A stretch of DNA of 64,000 nucleotides from Pavona decussata (Eukaryota). The notes beneath the pieces were generated by a model, which had not been told where the DNA came from, ran no database searches, and saw only the letters and a program-made list of their open reading frames with translations. The stretch is taken from positions 1,054,001 through 1,118,000 of the forward strand of contig CDRNST010000013.1 in the NCBI GenBank assembly GCA_977016875.1, given 5' to 3'. A program made the position numbers and the translations under genes. This document shows, in pieces, positions 9,935-35,812 of this stretch. Position 1 is the first letter of the stretch. The number at the start of each line of letters is the position of its first letter.

Positions 9935-10112
9935 TGTTGTACAAGCCTGCGTGCAAACCACGCGTTCAGGGCGGGAATTTAAACCTTCCAGGTGACTTTT
10001 GTACGATCTTAATTAGATGCAAAATAGACAACAATCAGTTTTTAAAAAGTAAAGAAGTATATGTTGAACAAAACGTTGTGTTTTCCATTCATTGTGAAAA
10101 TGGGCCCATACA
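9935..10112 (+). repeat. Putative 5' LTR of BEL/Pao element A
   Basis: TGTTG...CATACA lies directly upstream of the PBS. The left boundary is inferred because no second LTR is present. Confidence 0.5.
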
Positions 10113-10114
10113 TT

Positions 10115-10125
10115 TGGTAGCAGAG
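10115..10125 (+). promoter_or_regulatory. Primer-binding site complementary to the initiator tRNA-Met 3' end
   Basis: TGGTAGCAGAG, 2 nt after the CA end of the LTR and just before gag. Confidence 0.65.
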
Positions 10126-10140
10126 CATAGCAGAGCATAC

Positions 10141-12866: not shown

Positions 12867-13150
12867 ATATCCTGAAACGAGATTTATCACCCCTAGTCAA
12901 CGTGATTTTAACAAAGCACTAAGAAGTGCTAGGGTGGTCATAGAACAGGCTTTTGGACTGTTAAAGGGGCGATGGCGTTGTCTCCTGGTGAAACTTGACG
13001 AATCCGTGGACGTCTGACGAATTTAGCCTGCTGTATATTGCATAATATCTGCATTGAAGTTCGCAATGATGTGGACGTGGACCCCCAGGATAATGAGCAA
13101 GACGTGCTCCCCCCACTCCCAGGCCTCGTGAATCGTGAAGTTTCACGGCT
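12867..13150 (+). pseudogene. Harbinger A transposase (HARBI1-like, DDE_Tnp_4) C-terminus
   Basis: FNKALRSARVVIEQAFGLLKGRWRCL...ACCILHNICI. Confidence 0.85.
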
Positions 13151-14654
13151 AAGGAAAAAAAAAGATAAAGGAGATATTTTTCCAATGACTTGCACTTCTT
13201 TAATGAACAACAGACAGAGAGCACCTGTGACAATCATTTTAGTAAATCAACCGGTCTCGGTGCTCAGTTAAGTCAACAAATTTTAACGAAGTGGTAATTG
13301 CTATGATTTCTTTTTCCTGTTTTCTTACAAAACTTTATTTCTCACATGCATCCTAAGATAATTATTTGGCTTGTCAATCTTAAATCGTGACCCGTTTTGG
13401 CGCCTCAGACAGCGAGCAAATTTTTAATTTGAATTTTAAGATATGAAAATGTCTTTTATTTGATAACAAAAATTTTCAAGTAATAGTTAAGAGACAGTCC
13501 GCGTTAGATTCGACCGGTCAATTTGGACCAGTCGTTCGATTTCCTTCAAATTTTCAGCAACAGACAAAGTTGATATAACATTAATGAAAACACATTTGTT
13601 TTGATTCTAAACTTAACAAGACCCGAAATTTTGAGGCGAATGTTCAACCCTCCCGAATCCCCGAAAATCGACCTTTCACCGAGTCGAAATTAACCCGTTT
13701 TCGGATGTTTGCCGCCGAATTAATATTTATCCGAAAAACCTTACATTTATACCACGAACACATACACTATACTTCTTTACAAATATGGTATATAGAACTC
13801 ATATTATTGAGAACTTTTAAAAGGAGGGCATCTCAAACATACCAATGTTAACGATTCGTGCACGGAGCGTGTCAAGTGCTGCAACAAAAACCAACATTTC
13901 TCAAAATTCTGACTTACTCTGGAAGTCTCGTGTATTTTTTCAAAGAGTACTAGGATAGTGTCCTTAAACTACGGAATAATATTTAGTGGATATCTATACT
14001 TCGAAAAGATACGGCCGCAACAATTTTGGGCAAATCTCTTATTTTCCGACACGTGTTGTGTGACAGCGATGGCATCCCAAGGCAACAAATTTCGACTTTT
14101 TCTGTCTGGACCGCAACTTAAAGTAGACAAATACGTTTTAAAAGGGTAAACAATTAAAAACATACCTTAAAAGTTCCACTGTTTTGCTTCCAAGACTTCA
14201 TGTTTCACCGATTAACTATCAGCAAATTTGATGGCCGTGTCACGGTATCCGTGTTCTTTATTTGTTGGCTTGCAGACGACGATCATGCTAGCTAAAAACC
14301 TGAACAACTCTACAGAATTCCGTGAAATTAGTTTTGTTATTCAACCGGGCACTCTGCCGACCAAACAGTCATCAGTTGCAGAATTTATATCGAGGAAAGA
14401 CTTTTGAAAGTTGTCGTCCATCTTTGTTTGAAATAACAACCGCTGACAGTAACAACACTTCCGGTCTGATCGAACCAGAAACAGAACATCGTCTACAGTA
14501 AGAAGTCGTGCACTAAGTTCAATTTCTAGAGTTTTATTGTTATTAACGTACTGTTAATTACTTGATTATTTCTAGCTTATTTTCTACTTCAAATGCATAC
14601 ATGTTTATGCCGGGCAACTCATTATTTAACCCTTTTACGTTATCTAAGATGTAT

Positions 14655-15257
14655 TGGTGGTTTTCACCTCACACATCGTCACGCAAGTAAAAAAAATAAA
14701 ATCCTCAACAATTCAATAGATAAAGTCAAGAAATAGATATGTTGTAGAAGAGTGATACATAAACAACGTGTAAAAGCCACAGGGCCGTGCGATATCTCAT
14801 AACCGAGTTATTCAAGAAAATGTTCCACGGAAAATTACAGAGTTTAGTATGGGACGCCATGTTGGTGTTCCGTCTGAGGGACACCAACATGGCGGCCGGA
14901 AAGCAGCAAAAACATCTGAAATTTACCTTGGCTATTTCAAAGCCCTTCTCCTCTCCGCTGAACTTTCACACATTAACATAGATGTTTCTATTACATTTTA
15001 GCTGATGAGACCTAATAAAACACGAGGCAAATCGATGTTTTCATGTATTCGTGACATGTTTAGAGCAGCAATCCTTCTGTCACGCACTGCCTAAAAATCT
15101 TAAATTCAAACTGCTCTATTTAAAAAAAAATGCTTACCTTCTGAAAACAAGCAAGCCGATGGTATTTTATATTTTCTTTTATGTGATGAAGATAAAATCC
15201 CAAAATTGTGTTTAGATATGAATTTCACTTTTTTATGACGTCATGTGAAAACCAGCA
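14655..15257. mobile_element. MITE inserted in the left Sola3 arm, with a 2-bp AT TSD
   Basis: AT|TGGTGGTTTTCAC...GTGAAAACCAGCA|AT. The right arm shows the empty site (ATGATGTATTTTAC in reverse complement at ~16770-16783). Confidence 0.85.
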
Positions 15258-15600
15258 ATTTTACTATAATAATAACAAAAACTGTAAAAAAAAATATCGA
15301 AAAACTGTGAAATATATAGAAATGAGACTTCAGAAAGGTCTCAACAGCAACTGCGAATTTACGAAACTTGCAATAAATGAGGCGTTAGAATGGTCTCACC
15401 GAGAACTGCGAATTCTAATGTAAAAAGAAGAAAGTGCAGGAAACTACGAAAATTTGCAATTTTCAGTTGAAAATCGTAAACTTTGTAGCGACAATTTCGT
15501 CCTTGACCGGCATACCGCTGCAAAGGTCATAAACGTCGTAGTAAATGGGATGTAGAAGGCCGATCTCGTCAACAATGCTGTTCACCACTTCTTGTCTGTT

Positions 15601-16325
15601 GAAATACACATTGAAATCGGAGATCATGGAAAGAAACCAATGAATTTAAGTATTTATGATCGACTAAGGAGAGAGTGGGCCGCGCGTTTCTCTACTGTAG
15701 ATGAAGACAGTCAAGAAGCTTCTAATAATTCGAGAGAGCGCCCGTGGTTCAGAACAGGCAACCAGACCCTCAAATCTCACACGAGGGTGGGCCCTTTCAA
15801 AGCCACTTGCCCCAACTCGTTTTTCTGAAAATGTAAAGGATTACTTGAAAGCAAAGTTTAACCAAGGAGAACGAACGGGGTTGAAGACTAACCAAAACAA
15901 GTCTCTGCAGACATGCGAAACGCCCGAGATGGACAAAATGAGCGTCGCTTTTCCAGAGAAGAATGGCTAACAGCTGTTCAGATAAAGAACTTTTTCTCTC
16001 AGCTAGTGTCATCCAAGAGGAAAGGGCAAGATGCAGCTGATGACAAAAAACAGAAATTGAAGAAACACTGGAATAGGAAGAAGAAAGCAACAGACAAGAA
16101 GTGGTGAACAGCATTGTTGACGAGATCGGCCTTCTACATCCCATTTACTACGACGTCTATGACCTTTGCCAGTACCGGAAAAACAACAAACTTTCACAGT
16201 TTAATGTTTCAATGCTAAAGAACATTCTAAAGAACTATGAAGTCCCATTTACAGCAAAGGACAGAAAGAAGGATTTGGTTCAGCACTTGGCTATCTTTGT
16301 TGAAAAATGTTCGTGTTTTCTGTAA
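15601..16325 (+). pseudogene. Sola3 transposase C-terminal remnant (frameshifted)
   Basis: GWALSKP..RFSENVKDYLKAKFNQGERTG.K..MRNARD..RRFSREEWLTAVQIKNFFS. Confidence 0.75.
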
Positions 16326-18029
16326 AATTATTTAGCTAAGAGACAGAATAATATTGAGGTACACTCAGTTTTTAATGATTGCCTTCCATGCAGCTACCTG
16401 TCGCTCTCGGAGATAGCAAACAGGAGAGGCGCCGAAAAGTCTAGCCTAAATAAAACCCCCGGAAAACAAACAAAATAAAGAAAAACTCTGCTAGCCTTAG
16501 CCTCTTTTATTGTAGCGGTATGCCGGTCTAGGACGAAATTGTCGCTACAAAGTTTACGATTTTCAACTGAAAATTGCAAATTTTCCCAGTTTCCTGCATT
16601 TTCTTCTTTTTACATTAGAATTCTTAGTTCTCAATGAGACCATTCTGACGTCTCATTTATTGCAAGTTTCGTAAATTTGCAGTTGCTGTTGAGACCATTT
16701 TGAAGTCTCATTTCTATATATTTCGCAGTTTTTCGATATTTTTTTTTTACAGTGTTTGTTATTATTGAAGTAAAATACATCATAGATAACGTAAAAGGGT
16801 TAAATAATGAGTTGCCCTGCATAAACATGTATGCATTTGAAGTAGAAAATAAGCAAGAAATAATCAAGTAATTAACGGTAGAAATTGAACTTAGTGCACG
16901 ACTTCTTACTGTAGACGATGTTCTGTTTCCGGTTCGATCAGACCGGAAGTGTTGTTACTGTCAGCGGTTGTTATTTCAAAACAAAGATGGACGACAACTT
17001 TCAAAAGTCTTTCCTCGATATAAATTCTGCAACTTATGACTGCTTGGTTGGCAGAGTGCCCGGTTGAATAACAGAACTAATGTCACGGAACTCTGTAGAG
17101 CTGTTCAGGTTTTTAGCTAGCATGATCGTCGCCTGCAAGCCAACAAATAAAGAACACGGATCCCGTGTCACGGATACCGTGACACGGCCATCAAATTTGC
17201 TAACAGTTAATCGGTGAAACATGAAGTCTTGGAAGCAAAACAGTGGAACTTTTAAGGTACGTTTTAAATTTTTTACCCTTTTAAAACGTATTTGTCTACT
17301 TTAAGTTGCGGTCAAGACAGAAAAAGTCGAAATTTGTTGCCTTGGGATGCCATCGCTGTCACACAACACGTGTCGGAAAATAAGAGATTTGCCCAAAATT
17401 GTTGCGGCCGTATCTTTTCGCAGTATAGAGATCCACTAAATATTATTCCGTAGTTTAAGGACACTATCCTAGTACTCTTTGAAAAAATACACGAGACTTC
17501 CAGAGTAAGTCAGAATTTTGAGAAATGTTGGTTTTTGTTGCAGCACTTGACACGCTCCGTGCACGAATCGTTAACATTGATATGTTTGAGATGCCCTCCT
17601 TTTAAAAGTTCTCAATAATATGAGTTCTATATACCATATTTGTAAAGAAGTATAGTGTATGTGTTCGTGGTATAAATGTAAGGTTTTTCGGATAAATATT
17701 AATTCGGCGGCAAACATCCGAAAACGGGTTAATTTCGACTCGGTGAAAGGTCGATTTTCGGGGATTTGGGAGGGTTGAACATTCGCCTCAAAATTTCGGG
17801 TCTTGTTAAGTTTAGAATCAAAAGAAATGTGTTTTCATTAATGTTATATCAACTTTGCCTGTTGCTGAAAATTTGAAGGAAATCGAACGACTGGCCCAAA
17901 TTGACCGGTCGAATCTAACGCGGACGGTCTCTTAAGTTTTAATATAATTCAGTGTGGTTAATGTTTAATAACTAGTTTGTATTCTGCCATAAACAAAACA
18001 TTTTTTAAAATAAAGAAACGTCGGCACAC

Positions 18030-19190
18030 CTCAGTTTATGAAGTCGCTCTGGTACATACAAAGAAATGGTTCTAAGAGGTCTCTAACCTCCCTTGACAAT
18101 TTTGGCTACTTGACCATTGAAAACATCATCTGCTGGCTTCTTAATTCCCTTTCTGCCTCCTTTTCAGCCAGCCGTTCAAAAAAAACGTAGTCACGTTTTT
18201 GGCTTTCGTTTACAAAGGAAAAAATACTCGGTGCTATTGGAGCTCTGGGCATTGGATTCTTTATTTTTCTTCCTTTTAACGGGAGGCTGGTTTGAGGTAC
18301 CAGGTGCTTCTTTACCGGCCTTGGTTCCAGGTTTACATTTGAAGAAAAGCGACTCAGGAAATGCGAGATGTTCAGCCCCACTAGATTCGGCAGATTTTTC
18401 CCTTTGTTGTTTGGATGAAGTCGGCGTACGAGCCAAGGCTTTCTTACGCTTGTATGCATCTGGTTTATGCCTAAAGAGCACCTCTAAAAGTGACTGATCC
18501 TCTTCATTCTCGTCACTGAATTCTGATAGCTCGTCTGATGGTCCAGGAGCTGGGGAGGTAGATTTCCTAACAGAACTTGAGAGGGAAATATTGGAGGGCA
18601 GATTATCGTCTTCACACCCGCATTCAACAACAGTTTTCTGCATAATTTTGGTGCGACAACTCAGCATTTCATTTAAATCTTCATAATAGGTGAAAGTTTC
18701 TGGATCGTTCCCACTTCTGTTGTTGTGATCTTTCACATGTTTATGTCCGTCTTCTGGATTCTTCATTTTAGCCTTGCACTGGGCTGCTATGCAAATGGAC
18801 GTGACCTCCTGTTCCCTCAATAGCGTATTTAGCTGTTTTGCCATGGATTCCCAAACAGCAGAGTTGTGTCTCTTGCTGATGGGATGGTGATCTTTCCAAA
18901 TTTTTTTGTATTTTTACGTTAGATTTATGCAGGGCCTCACTGAAAACCACATTTTGTGACGTGGGCTCCCTGTTAAAATATCTTATTTATTAGCTATCAG
19001 AAATCGGATCTCCGCATCCGAGCAGTTAGCTGAGTGACCTTTGGTACCAGCGTTAACGTTGTTTCCTTTGCTGGAATCCACTCCAACGGCAACACTTGCA
19101 ATTTGGTACTGGGACACGGGTGAGATTACTTGTGAATATGCTGGCAAAACGGGTCGCAAGAATTGAGGAACCCACAGTTGACTTTGCCAT
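18030..19190 (-). pseudogene. Myb/SANT-like DNA-binding protein of Harbinger A, convergent with its transposase
   Basis: SDAEIRFLI...VWESMAKQLN..QCKAKMKN..KDHNNRSGN..F.YYEDLNEML trihelix motif. Confidence 0.8.
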
Positions 19191-19559
19191 GCAGGAAAAA
19201 TTTAGGGTCGGCGTGTGGCATCGGCAAAATGATCACCATGATCGCTCACTTGAGGAACATCGAAGCGAGACCTATAGCAATTATTTGTTGCGTTAAGTGA
19301 ATGCTTTGCATCTCCAATGTTGAAGGGAAGGAAACTTACATTGAATGGCTTGCCCTTGGATCATTTGAAGAAGAGAGATCGTGGTAGGGAAAATTATTCA
19401 TGTTGTTTCGCAGGCGGTAAAAAAATAAAAGGCGTGTTCTTTATACGATTTGACAAGCTTATCAGATAAATGACCGCAAGCTCCGTCTTATTGGCGGAAA
19501 TTAATTGCCGAGTCGCTTAAGCTACCTGGTTTGGTGGCTTAAATTTAATGACAATTGCA

Positions 19560-19673
19560 TTGAACTTTGCTGACTCACTTAACTTTAAGCGAGTTGGAAA
19601 AGCAACTGTTTTCACGAGATTTCCCGTTGTCACTCGCTAAGCGACTTGACAAATCGCTTGCGAAAACACACCC
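19560..19673 (+). mobile_element. Harbinger A right end (TIR ...CGAAAACACACCC)
   Basis: Pairs with the displaced end at 35800-35812. The BEL reading frame resumes at 19674. Confidence 0.75.
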
Positions 19674-21790
19674 AAGGACACCAAGCGGTTTTACACCTTT
19701 GAGTCCAATTGCCTCACCACAATTTGTAGCTTATCGTCCACCTCAGACTGGAGATACCTCAACCGATATGATAAGTTAGCAGATGATACATCCAAGGGGT
19801 TAAGGCTTGATGAGATGCTAAAGAATACTCAGTCGTTAAATGGTTCAGCGTTCTTTTTAAAGGAAGAAAAGGAAGAAACCTCCTGGCCAGCAATGATTGC
19901 AGTGCCAACCTTGAAAGACAGTGACCCTGAAGCCAGAAAGGAAAGCAGGATCTACACCGCTGCTGCTGTGCAAGTTCCAATAGAGAGTTTAGTATGGCAT
20001 TACTCTTCGTGGTGGAAATTGAAGAGAGCATTTGCTTGGATGTTACGGTACAAGAAGTTTCTCCAGTGCAACGTTTGCAAGCCGAAAATTGATGGTGCCC
20101 TTGATGGCGCTTCTCCAGTAACAAGTGCAGAAGAGATAGTTGGAAACCTATCCATAACTGAGCTGCAGAGGGCTGAGGAGGAAATTGTTCGACAAGTCCA
20201 GAAAGCGACCTTTCCAAAGGTGTTTGAGGCACTTATGAAGCTCTCACCTGGTGCAAACGAACAGTTAATGAAGAAGACACTACAGAAAGTGGGCACCTCG
20301 ATCTTCAAATTGAATCTAAAGTTAAGAAATTGGTTACTATTCGTTTGCGGATTACACAGTGCTCCTGTATATCCTTATATTCTACCCAATGATCACCATG
20401 TGATGGAGCTAATAATCCAGCACAGCCACGAGAGGGTGGGCCATATGGATCAGGAATCTGTCTTATCAACTCTGAGAAAAAAGGTTTTTGATTTTTAAGG
20501 GATGCTCTGCAGTGGGACGTGTATTGAAAAGGTTTGTTAATTGCCAAAAGAGGAAGGCACCCACTTAAGAGCAGTTCATGGCAAAGTTGCCTGAAGACAG
20601 GATTACCCTCCACAAACCTCTCTTCACATATGTCAGTGTGGACTTTTTTGGCCCTATAGAAGAAAAGCAGGGAAGAAGTAGAGTCAAGAGATATGAATGC
20701 ATTTTCACGTGCTTGACAGTCTGCGCCATACACATAGAGGTTGCAAACACCTTAAATATTGAAAAGGTGTCTTGATTGCCAAAGGAGGAAGGCACCTACT
20801 TAAGAGCATTTCATGGCAAAGTTGCCTGAAGACAGGATTACCCTCCACAAAACCTCCTTTCACATATGTTGGTGTGGACTTTTTTGCCCCTATAGGAGTA
20901 AAGCAGGGAGGAAGTAGAGTGAAGAGATATGAATGCATTTTCACGTGCTTGACAGTCCGCGCCACACACACTGAGGTTGCAAACACCTTAAATACAGATT
21001 CCATGATTAATGCATTGAAAAGATTCATTTGCCTCAGAGGATACCCCGAGGAAATTAAGAGCGACTGTGGAACAAACTTTACTCAAGTGGACAAGGAGTT
21101 GAAATAAACGATTGAAGAATGGAATCAGCAATGGATCGATGGTTTCTGTGCTCAAAGAGGAATTCGGTGGATTTTGAATCCTCCAGGAGCGAGTCATATA
21201 GGAGGAGCATGGGAGAAAATGATCAGGTCTGTGCGCCAAATTTTGAAGGTCTTATTGGAGGAACAGGTGGTCTGTGACGAAGTGCTTCACACTGCTAGTG
21301 GAAACAACCAACATCCTCAACATTAGACCTTTGACGCAAAACAGTGATGATCCTATGGATGAGGAATCCTTGACTCCAAACGATCTGTTGCAACAGCGAC
21401 CATGTCACAGTTTGCCCCCAGAAATTTTTGAGAAAGAAGATTTGCACTTTCGTTGCCAATGGAGACAAGCGCAATACTTGTCAAATCTCTTCTGGAAAGG
21501 GTGGATTAAAGAATATCTTCGGACAGGAACAAAGGAAGTGGAACGAACCAAAGGAGAATTCTGATGTGGGTGATGTCGTTCTGTTCGCTGACAAGAACTT
21601 TCTGAGAGGTCAGTGGTCCCTTGCATGAGTCATCGAGGTCTTTCGTAGCGAAGTTGGACTCTTGCGTTCTGCAAGAATAAAGACAAGCTGCACCGTTATG
21701 ACCCGCGCAAAGCGCCAAAGACAAAGAGAGGTGAAAACGACAGTGACGACCAATTACGAAGCTGTGTCGTCTTGAAGTGTCAAGTCATTA
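19674..21790 (+). pseudogene. BEL/Pao element B: end of RNase H plus integrase (disrupted)
   Basis: KDTKRFYTF..WRY..ADDTSKGL; HHVMELIIQHSHERVGH; GVDFFAP; KSDCGTNF; GGAWEKMIRSV. Confidence 0.9.
20522..20991 (+). repeat. ~235-bp tandem duplication within the BEL-B integrase
   Basis: TATTGAAAAGG...GCAAACACCTTAAA is repeated, with units starting at 20522 and 20757. The copies have visibly diverged. Confidence 0.9.
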
Positions 21791-22147
21791 GTTATTCAGA
21801 ATCATCCGGAACTGTGATCGCACTTGCAAGTAGCACCTTGATATCCTCTACCTACCTGGACGTTGTGCCAAGTTGCAGCTGAGGCAGACTCCAATCCAAA
21901 TTTGTTGACCAACATTGGACATGGCATTTGACATTACCAATGTGCCTTGAACGTATGTGGATCTACTTTGGACGTGGACTCAATTGGGTGTATTGACACT
22001 CTTACCTAGTGACATTTATCTAAGATGTGGACAGTTTGTTTATATTGCTGACTGTTATAAAGTAGCTTTACGTCATTTCACGTTAAATTGCAATGGTGGC
22101 AGATAGTGTAAATGAAATAGTTTCCATAGATTTCATTTAAGAGCCGG

Positions 22148-22508
22148 TGTAAGTCCCATTGCGTGCTTACATTTGACGTCATAATCTGGAACATTTTCCA
22201 TGTGCTCCGTCTAAGAACAACAAGTCCCCATGTTTTGCACTCGCATAATTTGTTATTCAATTCGTTAAGGTGTAGACACTTTGAATTCGAAACAGTCGGT
22301 AAGTTCTGTCGTATACTGTGTGTATTGTTATTTTGCTCGTTAAAGGTGTAATTTCTTTTCGTAGAAAACCTGCCTTATTACCTAACTGGATGTTTACCCC
22401 GACATAATGACTGGAAAATTTGTGGAGTTGTCGATGGAATATTTGTAAGTAAATGGTTGAGTTTTTGCTTTTGAATCTTATGCATATGGTCTTGGGAACT
22501 TTGTAATA
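22148..22508 (+). repeat. 3' LTR of BEL-B
   Basis: Starts TGTAAGTCCC after the purine-rich AAGAGCCGG. It is the reverse complement of 41885-42256 and is followed by TSD TTTAT (22509-22513). Confidence 0.9.
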
Positions 22509-22513
22509 TTTAT

Positions 22514-22690
22514 ATATCGCATTTTCTATTTATACATATATTCGAATGCGGTTTACATCAGCATATGTCCATTAGCGACCTCATCCTACCCACCCAACCC
22601 ATGAAACCATGAAACAGCACAAAGACCATACCAGCACACCAGGAACTCCATGCCCTACTCTTTGCGATTAGTGTCTGGGTTCTTTAACCA
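22514..22690 (-). mobile_element. SINE fragment (Nin-domain-like core with an L2-like 3' end); target of the BEL-B insertion
   Basis: Minus strand reads TTAAAGAACCCAGACACTAATCGCAAAGAGTAGGG and GTAAACCGCATTCG...AAATGCGATAT. Its (ATTACC)n tail is at 42262-42281. Confidence 0.6.
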
Positions 22691-22719
22691 ATGACCTCCC
22701 GCACGACAGTCCGAAAATC

Positions 22720-23592
22720 AATCAACTGAGCTAATATGATGACAGCTATGAGGAGGAAAGTAATGTTTCTAAGAACAGTCATGATGAAGTTGTCCCTGAA
22801 AAGAGACAAAAACAAAGACAAGAAACTGAATATCCAGATTCGGTTTCCATTAATTCCATACCAAAGGCTGGTCAGCTGATGATACCAAAAGAAAAAAGCA
22901 TGATACATTTCCAATGGAGGCTTTTCATGTCAAAACGCAAGAGTGGACAATTATGGAGTCCCGACAAATTTTGGCAGAGACAGAGAAGGTCTCTTCAAGA
23001 CCTTTTAGAGATGCATTTAAAGGGACAAGCGTTGGGTGCAATAATGAACGGCCATGTACTTGGGTTGATAAAACTTAGAATCCCAAGACCATAAAAGCAA
23101 TTCATGATAGAATACAGTCAACTGTTGAAAGTCATACCAGGAAGCAAGTGCAAATGCACTCAGCTGCCAGGCGGGTCACCAATTCTTTTGCTTGTGAAGT
23201 CCCCTCTAATTTTAGAGCATATTTCAAGTACAATAATGTGTATTACACCAGATATAATGACCAGCCAGCTACCATCGAAGAATTTGTGGAAAGGAACTTC
23301 ATGAAGTTTATCAACAATGCTGGAGAGGTTTGTATGCCAAAGGATTACAAAGAGGAAGAAGATGTTCTTATTCAAAAAGCAACTGACAATAAGCTTATGC
23401 TTCTAGATAGTCAAGGTAGCAGGTATCACTTGTATGACCTGGAAATTGGCACACAAGAACTCGTGTGCACCTGAGAGTTCAGAAATGTACTTCTGTTGTA
23501 GAAATCTTTTGATTACAGGAATAAACTCCTTTAAAGAAGCACATGTCTGCAACAAGTACTGCAAAATGATGAAGCTTCCTTTCCTTTCTTGA
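22720..23592 (+). pseudogene. Intronless alpha-kinase (eEF2K/TRPM7-type) relic
   Basis: PFRDAFK..WV.K..ESHTRKQVQMHSAAR..ATIEEFV..FMKFINN.G..LMLLDSQG..LYDLEIGT..FC..H.CNKYC, with frameshifts and stops. Confidence 0.85.
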
Positions 23593-24465
23593 GCTTGTAA
23601 AGAGATCTGTATGGGAACTATACATGAACTACTACTGCAGAATAGTTGCACCGAGACCGGTGTTACATTAGAGGAACACACAACATTTTTGAAGTTACTG
23701 TTATCGCTTTGAATGCTGTTGCTTGTGCACTGGGAACGTTTGATTCAATTACTAACATTTTCTATTCAGCATAGTACAATACATAAATTTGAGAAACAAA
23801 TCAAAATAGTTAACACTAATTGTTAATCTCAGCATACAAAGATATGTGTGACACTATTGTAAGGGACTGAGCTTGAAGGCGGAATGTTCCAGTTGAGTGA
23901 TGCCCTTTTCATTTTCTCTTTAAACTTAGTGAAAGGTAAATTAATGTTGTTAATCCTTTCTTTTTTTATTGTTCATGTTTATGAACTCTTTTCTGTATCT
24001 TCGTCCTTCTAAATGAAAGCAAGGTTTTAACAATGAAACAGACACTACACTGTACAAGTAAATGAAGGCTAAAGAATTATAACAGTGTTACATCAATTCA
24101 TAGCAATGAATTTTCAGTTAATATTTCACATAAATGAACATGTCAATCTCTATTTTATGAATCACGGTTTTTAATAAACCTTCATTTCAAATACATACAA
24201 GACTTAAAGCCTAAATTGTACAATAACGAAGAGGAAGAGCTTTCATTGTATATATTAAATAATCTTTTTGTCACATAATATATAACTAAGCTACAAGAGT
24301 AGCTGCAATCTGCTTTGTAAAAAGGTATTAAAAGAGGCTGTGATGCCTCAGTTTGCAGGGCTGACACATCAGTCACTCGGAAGACATTTAGCAAGATACA
24401 CTTGCAGTCCATATAATTCATCTTTTTGAATTATTAACAGACTCTAATTTTGTAAATACCAACAG

Positions 24466-24917
24466 GGTATCAGTGTGCCAAGTTTGGTTCCTGCAGAGTT
24501 TCGGACTAACAGTAGTCACCAAACTGATAACTGTGAAGAAAATGGCAGATGGGTTCATCCAATCACTGGCTCATCGAGGCGTTATGTTCTAGGTGACCGG
24601 TTTCACGCATCTACCAATCCGCACAAATCACCACTTTGTGACTACCACAACATAAATCTGTGCCTACAAAGCAATACAATAAAAACTAGTTTCCAGGAGA
24701 GTGAAAATCACAGAAAGAACATGAAGAGACTAAGAAGTGCTTGTGTGCAGGGATTTGGAATACATTTCCCGTACAATTATCTCATGGATTTTATCAAAAT
24801 AAAGTCATCATCGAGAAACAACTAGAAACCCTACAGAGGGGACTGCAGAGTGGTATGAAAATAGTCAGGGATAAATTCATTCGATTTGTTTATGATGCTG
24901 CCAATCCTATTACATAG
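24466..24917 (+). pseudogene. HMGXB3/Zisupton (KDZ-like) C-terminal exon relic
   Basis: After an AG acceptor: HPITGSSRRYVLGDRFH..PHKSPLC.YHNINLC..TS.QE.EN..KN..R. Confidence 0.6.
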
Positions 24918-26160
24918 ATCCTATAGTGTGACTTGTTCCTAACATTATGTTTCCAGTCAGTAGATGCTAAATGGCTTCTCCTAATTTGTAACATGTTAAT
25001 CTAATATCAATTGGATAATTTTCATAACCTATTTTTTTTATTGCATGAAGACAATTGGAACAGTCAAGGTCATTGTGTTTCTTTTTTACTAAGGGTGGAG
25101 TTCAGCTACATGTGACATTGACCTTAATTTTGGCACATACAGTGTACAGACTAGCATCCATAACTGGCTTGTTTAAGTGCCCCTAACCCCTAATTTGTTT
25201 TTTGTTTTTGCATTGTGACAAAATATAAAAAAGTTGGAGAAGATTAAAACAAAAATGAAGGAAATTCATAAAATCCTTGCGACGCTATGGATGTTTGAAG
25301 TTGCGATGTTCTCGTTCACGACCGCGCAGTCAGAGGTCTGGGTCCTAACTTCAACCACCAATTGATGACTTCAGCAGGGAAAGCAGGTAAATAACCTTGC
25401 ACTGCATTGCATGATATTCCACGCACAAATTCAACTTCTCTTTTTTGTTTAGTCATAACAAGTCAGAAATGTCATCGAGTAGTTCGAATACGGAATATTC
25501 CTTGGATTCAGAGGCCTCTGGCTTAGGGTCTATTCCTGAATACGACATTGAGGTAGAAGATGATTGTGCATCCCAAGAAGCTGTACATGTAGAAGCACAT
25601 TCACTGAGTGAAGAGAGCGGTGATAGCCTTGAATTGGCGTATGCTGAGGAACCCCTGGCTGACGAGGAATGGTTAAAACACTATGAAAAGAAGGCAAAAG
25701 AAACTGAGGAACTAAAGCTTAAGCTTGAGAGAAGACTGCACGGCGATGAAGGAGGGGATTCTTGGTAATTCGCACCTGTGCAAGTTCCCTCACGATTGTT
25801 GTTTACATTATAAATTTAACGTTGTATGTCCATGTTTCCAGGTGCTCATGCCAAAACTGCGACCAAAATTTGCTGTAGAATATGAGCGAATGCTACTGCT
25901 GTAAGGAACTCGAGGGGTTCGAGGAGGCTTTAAGCAGCGAACTTGTTTTGCAAAATTTACAGCTGGGTGCAAAACTTCAATGTATCACTGACCATCCCAG
26001 ATTCAACCCGGTGTGTCTTCAGAAATGGAGTCTTCGAATGGCAGCCGATAGATTTTGCACAAAATCGAAGGAAAGATATAGACAAACCGGTTCGGAAGAA
26101 AGGTGAGTTTCATTTAAATTAAGCCGTTTGTTTTGATAACAATAGGTATCAGGTATCAGG

Positions 26161-26937
26161 ATGACAGAGTCATCAAAGAAACGTCCCTCGAAATCTTTAA
26201 ATAATTCAATTTCTAGTACGCCTTTGAAGCCAAGTGCAAAGATGGTTAAAGTTAGTGATGAGAGTGATGTCTCCATCTCAAAATTATTCGAGTTAGTTTC
26301 GGATATGAACAAGAAATTGGACAAGCTTGACTGTATCGAGATTCATCTCTCCCGGGTTGATAAGGACATTGCGGATCTAAAGGAATCCGTTTCATTTGTG
26401 CATGGGAGCACTGATGAAATAAAGAAAGAGCAGTCGTCACAGGCTAAACTGTTACAGGATCTAAACGAAAAAGTGATGAAAATTGAAGCCCAAGCCGCAG
26501 TTCTACAACAGAATCTTGTTGACCTCCGAGCACGTTCCATGCGGTGCAATCTTCTGTTTTACAATTTGCCTGAACGAGAGGATGAAGAATCAATATCTGT
26601 TATCCAAGATGTTCTGCTAAACACCATGAAACTTGAAGGAGCTGATCAGATTGAAATTGAGAGAGCTCACAGGATGGGAAAGAAGACAGATGCACACAAG
26701 CCTCGGCCAATTGTTGCAAAATTCCTTCGATTTCAAGATAAGGAGTTCATTAGGAAGTCTGCGCACGTATTAAAAGGTTCACGAATTGGGATCTCTGAGC
26801 AATTCCCAAAAGAAATTGCGGAAAAACGCAAAGCCCTTTATCCTGTGATGAAGAAGGCTAAATCGGATGGACAAAAAACAACATTAATTAAAGACAAGCT
26901 ATTCATCAATGGTCAAAGGTACTATCACCAGGCATGA
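26161..26937 (+). CDS. LINE ORF1p (coiled coil, RRM and CTD; L1 ORF1/Transposase_22-like)
   Basis: Intact 258-aa ORF with RSMRCNLLFYNLPE, IERAHRMG, PRPIVAKF and KLFINGQ. Confidence 0.9.
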   Translation: MTESSKKRPSKSLNNSISSTPLKPSAKMVKVSDESDVSISKLFELVSDMNKKLDKLDCIEIHLSRVDKDIADLKESVSFVHGSTDEIKKEQSSQAKLLQDLNEKVMKIEAQAAVLQQNLVDLRARSMRCNLLFYNLPEREDEESISVIQDVLLNTMKLEGADQIEIERAHRMGKKTDAHKPRPIVAKFLRFQDKEFIRKSAHVLKGSRIGISEQFPKEIAEKRKALYPVMKKAKSDGQKTTLIKDKLFINGQRYYHQA

Positions 26938-27065
26938 TAAGATGTTGTTGATGACAGTTCCGGATGTCTTGCAAGGAAAGATGAGTACGGACCTACTGTG
27001 TTGAAACATTTTCTTTGTTTTTGTTTTGTCTTGTTAAAAATACTATTTTTTTCTGTGAATTATCA

Positions 27066-30000
27066 ATGTCGGATGAAATTGTAGAAGATCCTTTACCTTT
27101 TCCTATTTCACAGAACGAAGTTCCAGATAATATAAGGTCTGAAAATTTTGTCTTAGAGAAAAGAAGACTGGATAGTCTGGAATTCAAATTGTCGCAAGAA
27201 CAAGAGGGAAATGACCCCTTTGTATCTGATCCAGTGACTAATTATTCACCACGCAGGAATTTAATGATTATGTCACTGGCAAAACAAGTAACGTGCTATC
27301 CATGATTCATTTAAACATCAGAAGCATGAGAAATAAGTTTGATGATCTCCTGACTTACCTTAACTCAATAGCCTGTGAATTTTCAGTAATAGCTCTAACT
27401 GAAACATGGCTTAATGAGAATGATTATGATAACTTTGAAATCCCCGGTTATAATGCTCATAAGCTAAACAGGAAAAATAAAGTTGGAGGTGGCATTTGCA
27501 TCTTCACTAAAGATAACCTGAAAACCAAATTAAGACATGGCTTAATTAATGAAACTAGCCTCGATAATTGTGAATCCTTATTTCTTGAAATAGTGAATGC
27601 AAAAAATAAAAATGTCATGATTGGTACCATTTACCTTCCACCTAATAATAGGTTTTATTGTTTTGAAGGAGACCTTAAAGCAATTCTTTCAAAACTGGAT
27701 AAATCTGACAAACCTACCTACATTATGGGTGACTTCAATATAGATCTTTTGAAGTATAACAAATGTAGTTTTTCGAATCATTTTTATAACCACTTGGCCT
27801 CGTCAGGGTATACACCACTCATTACGAAACCAACACGTGTAACAGAAAGTACCGCTTCTTTGATTGATAACATTTATGCAAACACTCTAAACTTGAATGA
27901 ACATTTCAATGGTATTTTGTTTAGTGACCTGTCTGATCATCTTCCCATTTTTACTATCACAAATTTCAAGTTAAATCTGGACAATATAAAACCGGAGAAT
28001 AATATCTTTGGAACTAAATTAATAAATAAACGTTCTCTGGAATCTTTCTCCTGTGAACTTCAAAAACGAGATTGGGCGGAAGTATTATCAAAATACGATC
28101 CAATAATTTCTTATGATATCTTTATAAGTGAATTTTTGAAATTATACTGTAAGTGTTTCCCACTTAAGAAACTAAAAATGAGGAATATACGAGGAATTAA
28201 AAATCCATGGGCCACTAACGGCTTAATAAAATCATGTAAAACAAAAGAAAAATTATACAAAATTTTTTTAAATAACCCGACTACTGTAAATGAGAAACGG
28301 TACAAAGTATATCGTAACAAACTCAATCATTTTACACGAATCTCGAAAAAGCATTATTTTGATAACAAATTTAATCAAGCACAAAATAACTCTAAGTTGA
28401 CTTGGAATGCTATTAATGAGTTACTGAGGAAGAATCAATCGAACAAAGTCTTGCCAAATTCATTTGTGGATAATGACGACGAGCTAAATGAACCCGAAGT
28501 CATTGCAAATAAATTTAATGAATTTTTTGTGAATGTTGGTCCAAACTTAGCAAAGAATTTTAATAAGAATAGTGATGAATTTTTTAAATATTTAGAAGGG
28601 AACTATGAAAATTCCATGTTCTTAAATTATACAACAAGTGAAGAAGTTAATAGAGTGATTGATAACCTTGTAGGGAAAAATAGCTGTGGTATTGATGAAA
28701 TAAGCTGTAAAGTTATAAAATATGTTGCATCCTTTATATCAATACCACTCTCCCATATCTTTAATTTATCATTTGAAACAGGACAAATACCTGAGCAGTT
28801 AAAGACAGCTTTAGTAACGCCTCTGTATAAATCTTCTGATACTGATAAATTTTCAAACTATAGGCCAATCTCGGTCCTTCCATGTTTTTCTAAAGTATTT
28901 GAGAAAATCATGTATAAGAGGTTAACTTCATACATTGAAAAGAATGGCATTTTATCAGATCATCAGTATGGATTTAGGAGTAAAAGTTCAACCAGTCATG
29001 CAATAATTGAACTAATAGATAAAGTAACAAAGGTTATTGAAAGCAATGAGTACACCATTAGCATATTTCTAGACTTGTCAAAAGCCTTTGATACTGTCAA
29101 TCACTCCATTCTTCTGCGAAAATTGTATTTCTATGGCATACGTGGCAATTGTCATAAATGGTTAAAGAATTATCTCACAAACAGAAGACAAATTGTCAAA
29201 TATAACCAAGTAAGGTCTGCAGTTATGCCAATCACATGTGGGGTACCACAGGGATCGGTTCTTGGTCCTTTACTTTTTCTAATATACATCAATGACCTGG
29301 GTAATTGTACCAATGACCTATCTACTATTTTCTTTGCTGATGATACGAATCTTTTTATTTCTGGGAAAGACATATCAGAGATAGAATCAAACATTAATAG
29401 AGAATTAATTAAGGTTCAAAAATGGTCAATAAGCAATCAACTTACTCTAAATGTTAAGAAATCAAATTTTATTGTCTTTAAATCTCGTAGTAAAAAGCTC
29501 AAAAAGGAGCTTATATTAAATTAAATAACAAGACTTTAGAAAGAGTTAAACAAACGAAGTTTTTGGGAATCATAGTTGATGAACACTTGACATGGAAAGA
29601 TCACATTGATTATGTTACTTTAAAAATAATAAGAATTTGCGGAATTCTACGAAGAATTCGCTTTTTTCTGAACCAATCAACACTAAAATTATTATATTAT
29701 AGCTTAATATACCCTTACCTACACTATGGAAATATAGTTTGGGCTAATAACTTTCCCACATGGTTAGAAAACTTATTTAAGCTGCAAAAGAAAATTTTAA
29801 GAATCATCACTTTCTCTCCTTATAATACACCATCTCTTCCACTTTTCAATAAGTTGGAAATTCTAAACATACACCGAATAAATGATCTCTTGATTTCTTC
29901 ATTCAGTTACAACCTGGTCAACAATGCTCTTCCACCTTATTTTAATAATTTTTGTATTATTAATGCAGAACTTCACAATTATCATACAAGAAGTTCAAGA

Positions 30001-30159
30001 AAGCTACACAAAACTTTTAATAGGACAAATTATAGTGTTTATTCAACTTGCAACAAAGTAACTAATACTTGGAATAATATTCCTGCACCTATTAAGCAAT
30101 CAAATAGTGTTTTTATTTTCAACAAGAATATGAAAAAGTTTTTGATTTCTGGTGCTTAA
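27066..30159 (+). pseudogene. LINE ORF2p, APE endonuclease plus reverse transcriptase (frameshifts at ~27290 and ~29510)
   Basis: HLNIRS, LTETWL, MGDFNIDLL, SDHLPIF; NYRPISVLP, FLDLSKAFDTV, GVPQGSVLGPLLFLIYIND, FFADDT. Confidence 0.95.
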
Positions 30160-31041
30160 CGCTTTTGGACAATTTTACTTTATTATACTCGCTACTGGTA
30201 ATACTGAAATAATGATTAGATCAAGCCTTGGCTACATATAGTTAACGTATATCGTACAATACCATTAACAAGTAATGTACCGATACGTATTAATTAATTT
30301 TAAAGTTATGTATTGTAATAGGGGAACTGCCTTGTAAAAGCCCGCAAGGGTTTCTTCAGTTTCCCTTCCAAATAGTTATCTTATTTTGTCACATTTCACA
30401 TTGTAAATGATTTCAAATATGGGTAAATAAACAATCAATCAATCAATAACCTCTATTAAACACACACGCTGACACAGGACTCTTGTGGGAAACACATCCG
30501 GTTTTTAGTTTGCACAGTCTTAAGATCTCAAAAAATATTCATTGAGATAAATTTATGGTTGCCGCAGTCAGGAAAAACCAGTCAGGAAAATACTTAATGC
30601 TACCTCATTCAGTTAAAAGTAAATGAATATTTGAAATGAGATGAACTGTTGACAAAGATAACGTGTGGTCAAAAATATTTGCAAAGGAACTGATTTTCTT
30701 ATTTCCAAAGTATATGACTGTCTTCTATGGACCGTGGAAGTCAGTGGTCAGTAAAACGAGTGGCAACTCGTGATTTTGGTTATTGAAATTTTCACCCTTG
30801 TCCACACTTACTTGCGCAGCATTGCCTACAGAGAGTTCTCTCATTTGGTCTATGGTTACCTTGGAGACCGTCGGGTTCCTCTTCCTGCCTCTGCCTATAC
30901 AGCAATGAGAAAACAATTTCCTGCAGCTAAAGAAGACTCATTTACTGGATTTGACCTTGATGAAGAGACGTAGTCTATTATGTCTCGACCGCAAGTTGCT
31001 TAATTAGTTCAAGAAAAGTGCACAAAACACCAATTACCAGT

Positions 31042-31248
31042 GCCTGGTTGTTCGAAAGCTGATAAGCGCTAATCCACAACTAAAAGTTGATCAGGTTTTC
31101 ATCTCATGCATTACAAATGACGTAAAGGCTAATGCCAACCTAAAGGTGCTGAAAGGTAAAAAAAAAGTCCAAGTCTATACTGACCTTAAGAAGAATCTTT
31201 ATTGATTAGTAATTAAACTTGAATCAAAGTTCACGTTAATCCAGGATT
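31042..31248. mobile_element. MITE fragment interrupted by Harbinger B
   Basis: GCCTGGTTGTTCGAAAGCTGATAAGCGCTAATCC end, with the reciprocal TAATCCAGGATTAG cut at the Harbinger B terminus. Confidence 0.5.
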
Positions 31249-31780
31249 AGGGAGCTTAAGCAACCACGACGATGACTGGGAGGACGACGACCGGAAGTAG
31301 GGTGAGCGTTACTGCGCGGGTGCAGCCAAAGAAGGTCGTCCTGATCACGTCAACGACGTCAGAAGTAGTAGTTTCTTGTTGTTGTGAATTAAAGAGTTTA
31401 CTGCTCACTAAAAGGTATGAATTTACTATCATTTGTCACAGTTTATAACTGATTGGAGTTTTAATTCTCTTGTGCGTTTTTTTCAAGCTCCTTTGTTCGG
31501 TTTGATGAAGAGAACAAATTTATTTGAATCATTGCTTTCCCTTCACACAGATGACAAGTGAGTCGAGCCAGGCGGGGGAGAAAGCTAACTTAAAGACGTA
31601 AGCATGAGTTTATTTTCAAGTTCTTTGATTGAAGAGTACTGATTTTCATTTTTCTTGAATGAAGATATTTAGATGGTTATACTATACACTTAAATGTTTA
31701 ATTGCAAATTGAAAATTATCGGAAGTAACTTGCAGATTAACCTTTCAAGCGGCAAGTGATTTTATCAGATTGTTTACAGT

Positions 31781-32008
31781 AGAGATTTTACCATCGCGTA
31801 CGGCAAACATCAAACGCCAGGCTGAAATTTTCTCTTTGATGTAAAACAATGAAGCTTTTTTTGGTTTAAGTTTATCTCCACCCAGTAGGCGACAGCTTTC
31901 GAGCAAACACGAAAAAGGAAGTGAGTACAAGAAACACAAGTTTATGCATTTTAGAACAAACAGCGGCTTGACGTTTGGCGTTAGCCGTCAATGCAAAGCT
32001 AAATCTCT
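31781..32008. mobile_element. Small MITE inside Harbinger B
   Basis: AGAGATTT..CGGCAAACATCAAACG / TTGACGTTTGGCGTTAGCCGT..AAATCTCT inverted ends. Confidence 0.55.
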
Positions 32009-32611
32009 GTAGTACCTAGGGTTAAAGGCTCTCGAGTTTTGCAAATTGGTTTACAAACTATTGAAATGATTTAACACCATTGTACTACTAAAAGGTCTTT
32101 TAAAAATTGATTTCAAGGGAGAACGCGTGAGACCGCCCATTGATAGAACTACTCGATGTCTGTCGTTGTCATTTAACTTGCCAAATAAAGTTAAGCTTAC
32201 ATTAAATTAAATAGACAAAAATAAATAACCCTATATCATTCTGAAAATCAGACAAACATGGCACAAAATCAGTGATATCCCAGAAGTTTCAAATGTCAAA
32301 TAATCTCCGTACAACATAGTATTTTTTTTTTTTTTGGTGTTTAAATGCAATTCAGGCGCTACACGTTTAGCAAAGAACTCGCAGATGAAATTTAAGGCTG
32401 TACACTGAAATGAAGATATGCCAGAAATTGAGTAATTTGTGTTCGATCTTCATATTTAGCGGTAAATTTGACAGCAAAATTTCAAAATGCTTTTACAGCC
32501 AAATATATGAAAGAGGTTTTAAAAAGTGGATTAATTTATTTCTAGCAAACCTCACATGACTTTCTGCTAGACTCAATAAAAACAAACATTTTTTTTATTT
32601 ACTTTGGTAGG

Positions 32612-33323
32612 AATCCAAACTTTGTGTGGAGTAATGAACACGATATTGTAATGTGCCGAGAGGTTCTTATTGTTGAACCTTACCGATTTAAGATCAGAGG
32701 CCCCGAAAGAGGAAAGGCTTGGGAGTCATTGGCAGAAACGTTGAACGAAATGTCATCTTTATCTTCAAAGTTCAAGGTAACTGCACGGTCTGTCCGCGCC
32801 CGCTGCAACCTGCTAACCAAGAAAATGCAGGCCAAACTGAAAAGTGAAGAGAAAGCTAGTGAAATTGATGTGGAAACTACGGAGCTTGATAATCTATTAG
32901 AAGAAATTTTAGAAAAGAAGAAAGCTGCCAAGGAGAAGTTAGAGAGTGATGAGGATAATAATAAGAAAGCAGTTGAGAATGACAAGGTAGCAGAATAGAA
33001 CGAATGGGACAAACTGCCAGAAGAAAGAAGGAAGGTGATGACTCGGAAGTGCTAAAGAAAAAGAAGAGTCAAAGGAGCACAGTAGATGCCGTGGAGTATT
33101 TAAAGGGATTCTTCTGAAAAACCAAGAACTGGAACTCAGGAAGAAAGAGCAGGAGAATATGATGGAGAGGGAAAAGGAAAAGAACCAGAATCAAGAAAAG
33201 CTGATCTCCACCATGGTTTAGCAGCAACAGGAACAACAACAAATGATGATGATGATGATACATCAACAGCAGCAACAGTCACAGGCAATGTTAGCTTTAA
33301 TGCAAAAACGTGCTCCAAAGTAA
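32612..33323 (+). pseudogene. Myb/SANT-like accessory protein of Harbinger B
   Basis: WSNEHDIVMCREVL..PY..RGKAWESLAETLN..F.VT.RSVR.R..LL, then a coiled coil and a Q/M-rich tail. Confidence 0.8.
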
Positions 33324-33566
33324 CTTTTAGAAGTTTGCTTGCTGAACAGTGTAGTTGAGTTTAAGTTTTAAATGTCCCTTTGATGCATTAAAAATAAATT
33401 TATAGATCATGTTGTCTTTTACACATCGCCGAAAACCTCAGTTTAAGTTGTGTTTATACAATACAGAAATGTTTAACTACTATTGCTGGGGAGAAATATC
33501 ACATGCTCTCCCTTTGATGTAACAGCAATTCTGTTTAAAAAAGAAATGAACATTTCATTGACTTAT

Positions 33567-34720
33567 CAAGAGAAATACTCTTCCAGTGTTGGTGGGTCGA
33601 GATCAAAAAAGGTGGCCGTTTGGTTGCCATAAAGACAGGTAAGGGCATTCTGTAGCAGAGCAGAAAAAACATACATTTTCCCAATGCTACTGAGCCCAAT
33701 AGTTGATAATATCCCCAAATAGCCATTCAACAGAAGACCTTACAGCACTCATTGCAGTGTTGTATGCCTTCATGTGATCTGTAATAACTCCAAATCTGAA
33801 TGGGCCCTGAAGATGTACTTTAAGGGGGAAGGCGGGGTCCCCATAGAGACACATCGGTTGACCACCGTGGGAAAAGGCGTACTGTTGTAGGTCTTGCAAC
33901 AGTCCTGAATCTGCAAGCATTGATGCATCGTGCTTTCTTTCTTCTGCAACAAACAGAGTAGACAAAACAGTTACAATAACTAATGCCTGTTATTTACAAA
34001 GGAAGACACATCTTAACCTCCAAATTTATATAAAAAAGAAGAGCAATTTAGCTCACCTACTGGACCATACATATATCCAATTAATCCATTAGGTAACGCC
34101 AAGGATTGAAACTTTATAGCATGGACCCTCTTATGACCATTGTACAGTATCGGCTGATTCTCTCTCGGTCGTGCAAATTGGCCTCATGGTGCCATCGATG
34201 AAGCCAAAGCAGTTGTTCAAAAGTGCACCTCTTGAAGTGATAGCCGCTGCGTACGTCTCAAGGTGATCGGGATCCAAGACGTCAAGATTTCAGTGGGTTA
34301 GCCGTTAGCCATGTACATCATATACGTGGTCGATCAAAATATTTGTAACCATGCTGATTACTGGAATTGGCTTAGCGAATCTCAGAATCATATCTCCGTA
34401 TCTGCAAGGGTATGATAACCGCCTCAACAGCATACATAAGCCTTCTATACCACCACAAATCGACCTTTGATCACATCGTATGGTTTCAAGAATTTCCAGA
34501 ACATCGGCAAGTAAGTGTATATCTCTTTTCTTGAATCGGAATTCAGCAAGACATTCTGACTCGGCCATCTCATCTAAGTCAAATTTCGGGTAAGCATCGT
34601 AAGGTTAGTCCGGATTTCTTGGCTTAAACAGGTCGTAGAGAACCAAAAATTCCTCATTGCCAATGAAATCTAATCCACGACTAAGAAGACATAGATTTTG
34701 GATGTCTCTAAACGATGTCA
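33567..34720 (-). pseudogene. Harbinger B DDE_Tnp_4 transposase (one intron at ~33945-34037)
   Basis: EFRFKK.D..GLCMLLRRLSYPCRY; CFGFIDGT; YNGHKRVHAIKFQS; KHDASML; LYGDPA; AMSAVRSSVEWLFG. Confidence 0.9.
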
Positions 34721-34864
34721 TTTCTTGTAAAGAAGCGAAACTGAACGAAGGTTTCAAACCTTGTCATCCTTGAAAACTTCACTGCTTAAGTTTCTTTTTC
34801 TCACCTAAAATGACGTTCTCGTTCCAGTCCCTCCACGTTTACTTGCCGTCGTTGTCCTCCCGGT

Positions 34865-35642
34865 TTCCTGAACAGAATCTACACTGGTCTGTTGGAACTC
34901 TTTCTTGAATGTCTAGAACTCTGTTTCCTACGAAAACTTTCCACTTTGAACTTCGACCTTTATCCATGAAAGCGCGATCTGGCTGTCTGACCAGGCATAA
35001 ACTGCTTCCGTCGTTAGTCGGAGAGCTTGCACGACCTAACTTAACAGCTTGGCAGTTATAAATGCAGCAAGGAGTTCTAATCTTGGTAAAGTCACTCGTT
35101 TAGCTGGCGCAACTATGGACTTGGCCATAACTAAATTAGAAATTCTCTTGCCTTCTTCGTCTTCAGCACAAAGGTAAACTGCTGATCCATAGCCTTCTGA
35201 CTGGCGTCGCCAAATCCATGGAGCTCCACTTTATCAACGGATGAAAAACCATGCAGTAACCATCTAGGAACTTTAATGTGACTCATGTCAGTCAATTCTT
35301 GCTTCCAAGTCTCCCATACCTCAGCGATATCAGGGTCCAGTGGCTGATCCCAGTCTAGGCCTCGAGGCCAAAAGTTCCTGGAACAACAACTTTGATGTCA
35401 TCAGAAACAGAGCCACCAACCCCATAGGATCAAACGCTCTAGAGCAGAGGCTAATTAAACTTCTCTTTGTCTTGGGATCTACCTCGGCTAGGATACTGGA
35501 AAGGTTTGTGAACATCAAAACATCATCCCGTGTGTTCCATGACGTTCCTAGTGCTTTTAGGGAGTCTGAAATCTTTTCTGGGCTGGTAGCTGGAAGAAGT
35601 GTTGGTGCCCTCTCTTGCAAAGGAGTTGCTTTCATCATCTCC
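34865..35642 (-). pseudogene. BEL-A continuation (end of RT plus RNase H), inverted relative to 10141-12866
   Basis: KALGTSWN..TKRSLISL..FDPMG..ELHGFGDAS..YGSAVY..TLPRLELLAA..WSDSQIAL, the region expected right after the YVDD motif. Confidence 0.85.
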
Positions 35643-35812
35643 CGTCATGTTATTCAAATTGATTTATTCGAGCGCGTGATCTCCTCCAATTACTAGAATG
35701 AAATATCTTACTTGTGAAAACACCCATTAACTTTCAGTTGCTTAACGAAGTCGGTAAACAAAACACCCTCAGGAATGTTAAGGGAGACATCCAGTGTCGT
35801 GAAAACACAACC
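35643..35812 (-). mobile_element. Harbinger A left end, displaced by the inversion
   Basis: Minus-strand GGTTGTGTTTTCACGA at 35812 interrupts the BEL-B frame after ..KVLKCLNN. Flanks AAT (here) and AAG (19674) form a 3-bp TSD with one mismatch. Confidence 0.75.

Follow-up and report, generated by a model that had tools for sequence, protein, structure and literature searches.

The 64,000-nucleotide window analysed here (the whole stretch of DNA under consideration, C13:1054001-1118000 in a eukaryotic assembly of 602 Mb and 1180 contigs, from Pavona decussata) is a transposon nest. Within it, the 22,774-bp segment at positions 12867-35640 is very likely a real, derived chromosomal inversion that arose by non-homologous end joining with loss of sequence at both ends, a delINVdel rearrangement. 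Five elements are recorded as split in this sequence, far above chance: two BEL elements (BEL-A and BEL-B), a Harbinger transposon (Harbinger A), a pair of Kolobok-like ends, and a short interspersed nuclear element (SINE). One flip of the segment, with two junctions, repairs all five, which makes the present order the derived one. An earlier note had proposed a ~22.8 kb inversion recorded by five split transposons. Each rejoining was tested by aligning pieces of the window with naturally occurring copies in other parts of this genome, where the best non-self match of any split element is at most 95% identical, and the proposal is borne out for all five pairs. Its left breakpoint (12867) stands; its right breakpoint (35642) moves by 2 bp, to 35640/35641. 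The sequence itself shows that the segment is flipped and which order is the derived one, where the breakpoints lie (to 1-5 bp), how much was lost, and that the two breakpoints have no homology to each other.

BEL-B is the element with both long terminal repeats (LTRs) in the window. Self-comparison of the window returns an inverted repeat pair, 22148-22511 and 41882-42256, and the LTRs themselves (22148-22508, plus strand; 42256-41885, minus strand) are inverted and 92% identical, with one 13-bp insertion or deletion. The motif TTTAT lies directly after the plus-strand LTR (22509-22513) and directly before the minus-strand LTR (42261-42257). Reading on the minus strand from the LTR at 42256 gives open reading frames (ORFs) of the gag, reverse transcriptase (RT) and Peptidase_A17 type; an integrase ORF (rve, Pfam) precedes the plus-strand LTR. 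This layout of LTRs, ORFs and TTTAT identifies the 5′ half (35813-42261, minus strand: 5′ LTR, gag, RT and Peptidase_A17 region) and the 3′ half (19674-22513, plus strand: end of the RNase H region, integrase and 3′ LTR) of one BEL-B, lying on opposite strands 13 kb apart, with TTTAT as its target-site duplication (TSD). In six other BEL-B copies (on contigs C78, C210, C194, C247, C4 and C58), the match to 37507-35812 (minus) joins the match to 19673-20758 (plus) without interruption; the 5-nt overlap at this joint is as expected from a short target duplication. Both earlier claims about BEL-B therefore hold: its LTRs, with their common TSD, become direct once the segment is flipped, and its reading frame at 35813 (minus) runs into 19674 (plus) across Harbinger A. 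The hallmarks of BEL/Pao elements, namely LTRs with a short TSD, a DUF1759 gag, RT, Peptidase_A17 and integrase, are found in BEL-A and BEL-B.

Two observations concern the interior of BEL-B. In its integrase region, 20522-20994 is a 236-bp tandem duplication, with copies 91-94% alike, which four other BEL-B copies lack. In its 5′ half, ORFs at 38463-41066 (minus strand) resemble by eye a Ty3/Gypsy-type gag and RT start rather than BEL; Pfam returned no significant match to these ORFs, and the stretch may be another nested fragment.

BEL-A is divided between the left flank and the inverted segment. Its 5′ part (9937-12866, plus strand; 93-95% identical to a copy on contig C18) comprises an LTR-like stretch (~9937-10126, with two occurrences 5.8 kb apart in the C18 copy), gag, and an RT that runs to ...CVDDILTGAPD; Pfam matches here are DUF1759 and RVT_1. 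The RT/RNase H piece (34864-35640, minus strand; Pfam Peptidase_A17) is inverted relative to the 5′ part. The C18 copy is the nearest relative of both halves (94% and 95%). In five other copies (C18, two on C58, C130 and C347), the sequences matching 12067-12866 (plus) and 35640-34864 (minus) are ordered on one strand. A spacer of ~90-91 bp, absent from the window, parts them in four of the five, and the second C58 copy has its own deletion at this place. The BEL-A sequence lost at the inversion amounts to 91-96 bp. The pairing of RT with RT/RNase H suggested in the earlier note is thus upheld by five collinear copies, but the continuation is not seamless, and the second piece spans 35640-34864 rather than 35642-34865. 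BEL-A is also cut short at 34864, where it meets the end of another Harbinger element, and its 3′ ~1.8 kb and 3′ LTR are absent from the window, which points to a further deletion. This 3′ truncation is a lesion separate from the inversion.

The break opposite BEL-A lies in Harbinger A. The 5′ end of this element (35641-35812, minus strand) carries the terminal inverted repeat (TIR) GGTTGTGTTTTC... at 35812 (35812-35801), which is unique in the window, and the first transposase codons; it is 92% identical to a copy on contig C60 and has 38 genomic matches. The 3′ part lies on the plus strand in two pieces. The first, 12868-13490, encodes the C-terminal end of a DDE_Tnp_4 transposase and is 91% identical to positions 1490-2114 of the C60 copy, L049 (C60:1954034-1957647). 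The second, 17936-19673, is collinear with L049 1-1494; it holds a degraded Myb/SANT-like ORF (18191-18844, minus strand) and the right TIR, GGGTGTGTTTTC (reverse-complemented), which ends at 19673. The 3-bp flanks of the two TIRs are AAT and AAG. L049 is collinear with window 19494-17932, then with 13491-12868, and then, after 899 bp extra, with 35636-35809. This collinearity with both parts bears out the proposal that the flip reunites the TIRs and their AAT/AAG flanks.

The 899 bp of L049 are found nowhere in the window and encode most of the 414-amino-acid (aa) DDE_Tnp_4 transposase. The loss from Harbinger A, ~899-901 bp, corresponds to roughly codons 6-305, and the window retains the first few and the last ~110 codons; the earlier statement that most of the transposase was lost is correct. 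In L049 both ORFs are intact, the one for the 414-aa DDE_Tnp_4 transposase and a Myb/SANT-like one of 364 aa (Myb_DNA-bind_4); this relative of Harbinger A may be an autonomous copy. A DDE_Tnp_4 transposase, a Myb/SANT-like second ORF (both intact in C60), short TIRs and 3-bp flanks place the element in PIF/Harbinger.

Between the two pieces of the 3′ part lies a nested long-TIR transposon (13491-17931), a 4.4 kb near-palindrome flanked by a TTAA duplication (13487-13490 and 17932-17935). Its inverted arms are 94-99% complementary, its terminus is GA..., and the corresponding site is empty in the C60 Harbinger copy. Among the 40 matches listed (132 first-look candidates), the arm is 96-99% identical, and its genomic matches often form inverted pairs 3-4.5 kb apart; by this measure the element belongs to a young, abundant family. 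Its centre contains short ORFs, one with a weak HeH/LEM match.

The SINE connects the inverted segment to its right flank. On the sense strand of this element, the body reads 22745-22514 on the minus strand (feature 22514-22745), and the tail, TGG ATTACC ATTACC ..., runs from 42262 to 42281 on the plus strand, outside the inverted segment. The body and tail are parted by BEL-B and by the inversion. A 27-mer predicted from the end of the body, one copy of the TSD and the start of the tail matches 194 sites in the genome when as many as 3 mismatches are allowed, compared with 0 for the reversed control. In all 100 sites listed the number of mismatches is 2, and the family consensus drawn from these sites equals the prediction at 25/27 positions. 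Recovery of this joint across the TSD indicates that BEL-B inserted into the SINE, the parts of which are now on opposite strands. The rejoining of the SINE body to an (ATTACC)n tail upon removal of BEL-B, as had been predicted, is thereby recovered, with two ATTACC units only in the tail. The genome-wide pattern search was used here as neither the window nor the retrieved genomic loci yielded any other SINE copy. ARAGORN identified no tRNA-like head.

The Kolobok-like ends are the weakest of the five records, since both ends need not stem from one insertion. The left end (9452-9682, plus strand) starts with TTAA at 9452-9455 and the terminus AGTGCCCC from 9456; it is ~230 bp long, with ~20 other copies at 70-81%. 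The right end (25172-25390, plus strand) is direct, not inverted, relative to the left end. There are exactly two occurrences of the 21-mer AAGTGCCCCTAACCCCTAATT in the window (9455 and 25175), each on the plus strand, where 0 are expected. Each of the ~230-bp left-end and ~220-bp right-end sequences has dozens of genomic relatives, and the two ends face each other, 0.3-17 kb apart, on at least eight contigs. In a 311-bp miniature inverted-repeat transposable element (MITE) on contig C132, which reads TTAA, AGTGCCCC...GGGGCACT, TTAA, the right end stands reverse-complemented beside the left end. The direct orientation of the ends in the window is therefore as the inversion predicts. The suggestion that they are direct now and inverted after the flip agrees with the convergent copies; the accompanying suggestion of a convergent transposase and KolX does not stand, as no transposase or KolX gene of the split element was found in the window.

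Kolobok elements duplicate a TTAA target, end in an RR (AG) terminus and encode a transposase with THAP, DDE and H2CH features (PMC6004289). The TTAA and AG terminus are present in the C132 MITE; in the window the left flank is TTAA and the right flank is TTTA (3/4 match). Distant copies (71-73% in the terminal stretch) yield weak THAP (E = 4.6e-4), HTH_Tnp_4 and DDE_Tnp_4 matches by Pfam. No nucleotide or protein similarity was found between the split element and a putative Kolobok at 54215-57270. The Kolobok label proposed for the split element (ends at 9456 and 25176) is thus only partly supported: the TTAA and AG terminus fit it, the THAP match of the distant copies is weak, and the window copy has no transposase. 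A PIF/Harbinger element with a TAA duplication was also considered as its identity and was dropped on account of the perfect TTAA flanks and AG terminus of the C132 MITE.

The two junctions (J1 and J2) are reciprocal; each joins BEL-A to Harbinger A, unrelated elements whose own parts are collinear in natural copies. Base-level comparison with these copies places J1 at 12866-12868: BEL-A extends to 12866, Harbinger A starts at 12868, and the A at 12867 is ambiguous, being either BEL-A sequence (A in one copy) or a 1-nt filler. The overlap is 0-1 nt and the joint is blunt. At J2 (35636-35641), homology to BEL-A runs from 35640 downward and homology to Harbinger A from 35636 upward, giving a microhomology of 2 bp perfect (TG, 35637-35636) or 5 bp with one mismatch. 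Both breakpoints lie inside coding regions, the BEL-A RT and the Harbinger transposase ORF, and the breaks in the latter are ~175 bp and ~1.07 kb from the Harbinger 5′ terminus, off the TIRs. Reciprocal junctions, no extended homology and sequence loss at both ends are the features of a delINVdel. Together, the blunt or 1-nt joint, the 2-bp joint and the losses at both ends most likely reflect two double-strand breaks that were resected and then closed by end joining. A single event, caused by classical or microhomology-assisted joining of these two breaks, would produce the observed arrangement.

A real inversion that formed instead by replicative template switching (fork stalling and template switching, FoSTeS, or microhomology-mediated break-induced replication, MMBIR), with the fork skipping ~0.1 and ~0.9 kb, is the least improbable competitor, although clearly the less likely mechanism. 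The microhomology at J2 and the loss at both ends would suit it, and inversions flanked by deletions are known as a class of complex rearrangement (PMC5338099). However, J1 is blunt or holds one ambiguous nucleotide, neither junction has a templated insertion or duplication, and two breaks plus resection account for all features with fewer assumptions. The earlier note had favoured end joining or template switching over ectopic recombination, a preference that the unrelated partners, the absence of homology beyond chance and the losses at both junctions support.

An assembly artefact, in which an assembler or scaffolder misoriented the 22.8 kb segment, is very unlikely. The region is dense in repeats and the arrangement is seen in one assembly; however, the window contains no Ns, at or near the junctions or elsewhere, and the junction partners have no common repeat able to mislead an overlap assembler. 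In addition, the reciprocal junctions each lack a defined piece (91-96 bp and ~899 bp), which an orientation error would not give.

Several points weigh against a derived inversion by end joining with loss at both ends. The junctions are known from one assembly alone, and in a search of that assembly for a second haplotype or un-inverted allele the single-copy core of the segment (22800-24170) gave a self match only. An exact look-up of the junction-spanning ORFs (35340-35693 and 12564-12872, both plus strand) in public assemblies returned no record, and an exact metagenome scan with the 31-nt J1 sequence returned 0 matches. The Harbinger A gap is measured against one full-length relative only, the C60 copy, and the ~899 bp might have been lost earlier, through an internal deletion in the window copy. 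Finally, end joining and template switching are inseparable by sequence alone.

The two remaining explanations have next to no probability. Independent truncated insertions of the same families in opposite orientation, without any inversion, could be imagined as every family involved is multi-copy in this genome, but the truncation points are complementary (to 0-91 bp in BEL-A and exactly in BEL-B), the BEL-B LTRs have a common 5-bp TSD, the SINE body and tail restore the family sequence across that TSD, and a single flip with only two junctions settles all five pairs. As causes of the inversion, ectopic homologous recombination between inverted repeats, a site-specific recombinase and aberrant transposition via transposon ends would all fit the presence of transposons at both breakpoints, but the partners are unrelated: the longest common word between the breakpoint regions (1 kb each) is 10 nt, compared with a shuffle mean of 10.2, and no inverted homologous repeats spanning both breakpoints were found among the window repeats or by word comparison. 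The lack of common homology excludes ectopic homologous recombination, and the position of the breakpoints in coding regions, off TIRs and common repeats, excludes site-specific recombination and aberrant transposition.

Before the inversion, the chromosome would have carried, in this order, a Kolobok-like transposon holding BEL-A; single-copy DNA; and a SINE holding an antisense BEL-B, itself holding Harbinger A. DNA breaks in the BEL-A RT region and in the Harbinger A transposase gene would then have been followed by rejoining of the intervening segment in reverse, without homology, a process in which BEL-A would have lost ~91-96 bp and Harbinger A ~899 bp. The oldest of these insertions are probably the SINE and the Kolobok-like element; BEL-B and BEL-A would have inserted into them and Harbinger A into BEL-B, before the inversion took place. 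The long-TIR element, a long interspersed nuclear element (LINE) within the segment and the 236-bp BEL-B duplication cannot be ordered relative to the inversion.

The near-palindrome at 13491-17931 lies 0.6 kb from J1, a distance equivalent to 0.6-1.5 kb from the deleted stretch along the ancestral order. A speculative and very improbable extension of the end-joining model is that this 4.4 kb sequence, prone to form a hairpin or cruciform, triggered the Harbinger-side break in the germ line, and that the inversion arose when this break was repaired together with another one at a distance of 22.8 kb. If true, this would be a natural animal case of a palindrome-induced gross rearrangement preserved in transposon fossils.

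The window can be compared with inversions in other genomes. In human HsInv0379, a polymorphic 415 kb inversion formed by non-homologous end joining (NHEJ) is polarised by interrupted L1s (PMC4591017). As in that case, the breakpoints here lie in abruptly interrupted transposons without breakpoint homology, end joining is the mechanism inferred, and the polarity comes from the broken elements. In contrast to HsInv0379, the window has five nested records, loss at both junctions and a 2 bp microhomology at one, and the segment is 22.8 rather than 415 kb long. The complex inversions flanked by copy-number variants (CNVs) include the class delINVdel (PMC5338099), in which, as here, the segment is flanked by a deletion at each end; unlike those cases, the deletions in the window are small (~0.09 and ~0.9 kb) and are inferred from paralogous copies, not from a reference allele. 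The window is thus an instance of a known rearrangement class, ordinary biology in repeat-rich, apparently non-genic DNA. In Drosophila, inversions reportedly arise by staggered breaks (Ranz et al. 2007), and in D. buzzatii the transposon Galileo is said to have mediated inversions by ectopic recombination. Like the Drosophila inversions, this is a paracentric micro-inversion with breakpoints in repeat-rich DNA. Unlike those formed by staggered breaks, its breakpoints have no inverted duplications, and unlike those formed by ectopic recombination, no transposon is common to both.

Nested transposons can polarise a small inversion and locate it with base-pair precision in one assembly alone, and the window is a clean, internally controlled case. 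It illustrates how the repeat-rich DNA of this animal genome is reshaped by non-homologous repair that loses sequence at both ends. For annotation, the flip recovers two BELs, a Harbinger, a Kolobok-like element and a SINE that would otherwise be called ten unrelated fragments, and the inversion is a possible marker in population or haplotype studies. What is new is one well-documented instance; both the class and transposon-based polarising have precedent (PMC5338099, PMC4591017). No new mechanism is revealed, and nothing in the data shows an effect on a host gene.

The remaining contents of the inverted segment comprise three features. The single-copy DNA at 22800-24170, the only such DNA in the segment, contains a putative alpha-kinase-like ORF (23148-23471, plus strand; Pfam Alpha_kinase, E = 1.6e-6). 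The LINE (26161-30159, plus strand; GC 0.30) has an ORF1 of 258 aa followed by an endonuclease and RT ORF2 (Pfam Exo_endo_phos and RVT_1) that is nearly open, as 743 aa + 198 aa; this AT-rich element is probably a young insertion. Harbinger B (33687-34864, minus strand) is the second DDE_Tnp_4 element (Pfam, fragments), and its terminus abuts the truncated BEL-A: the copies of its family begin at query position 37, which is window position 34864. It has many MITE-like relatives of ~160 bp in the genome.

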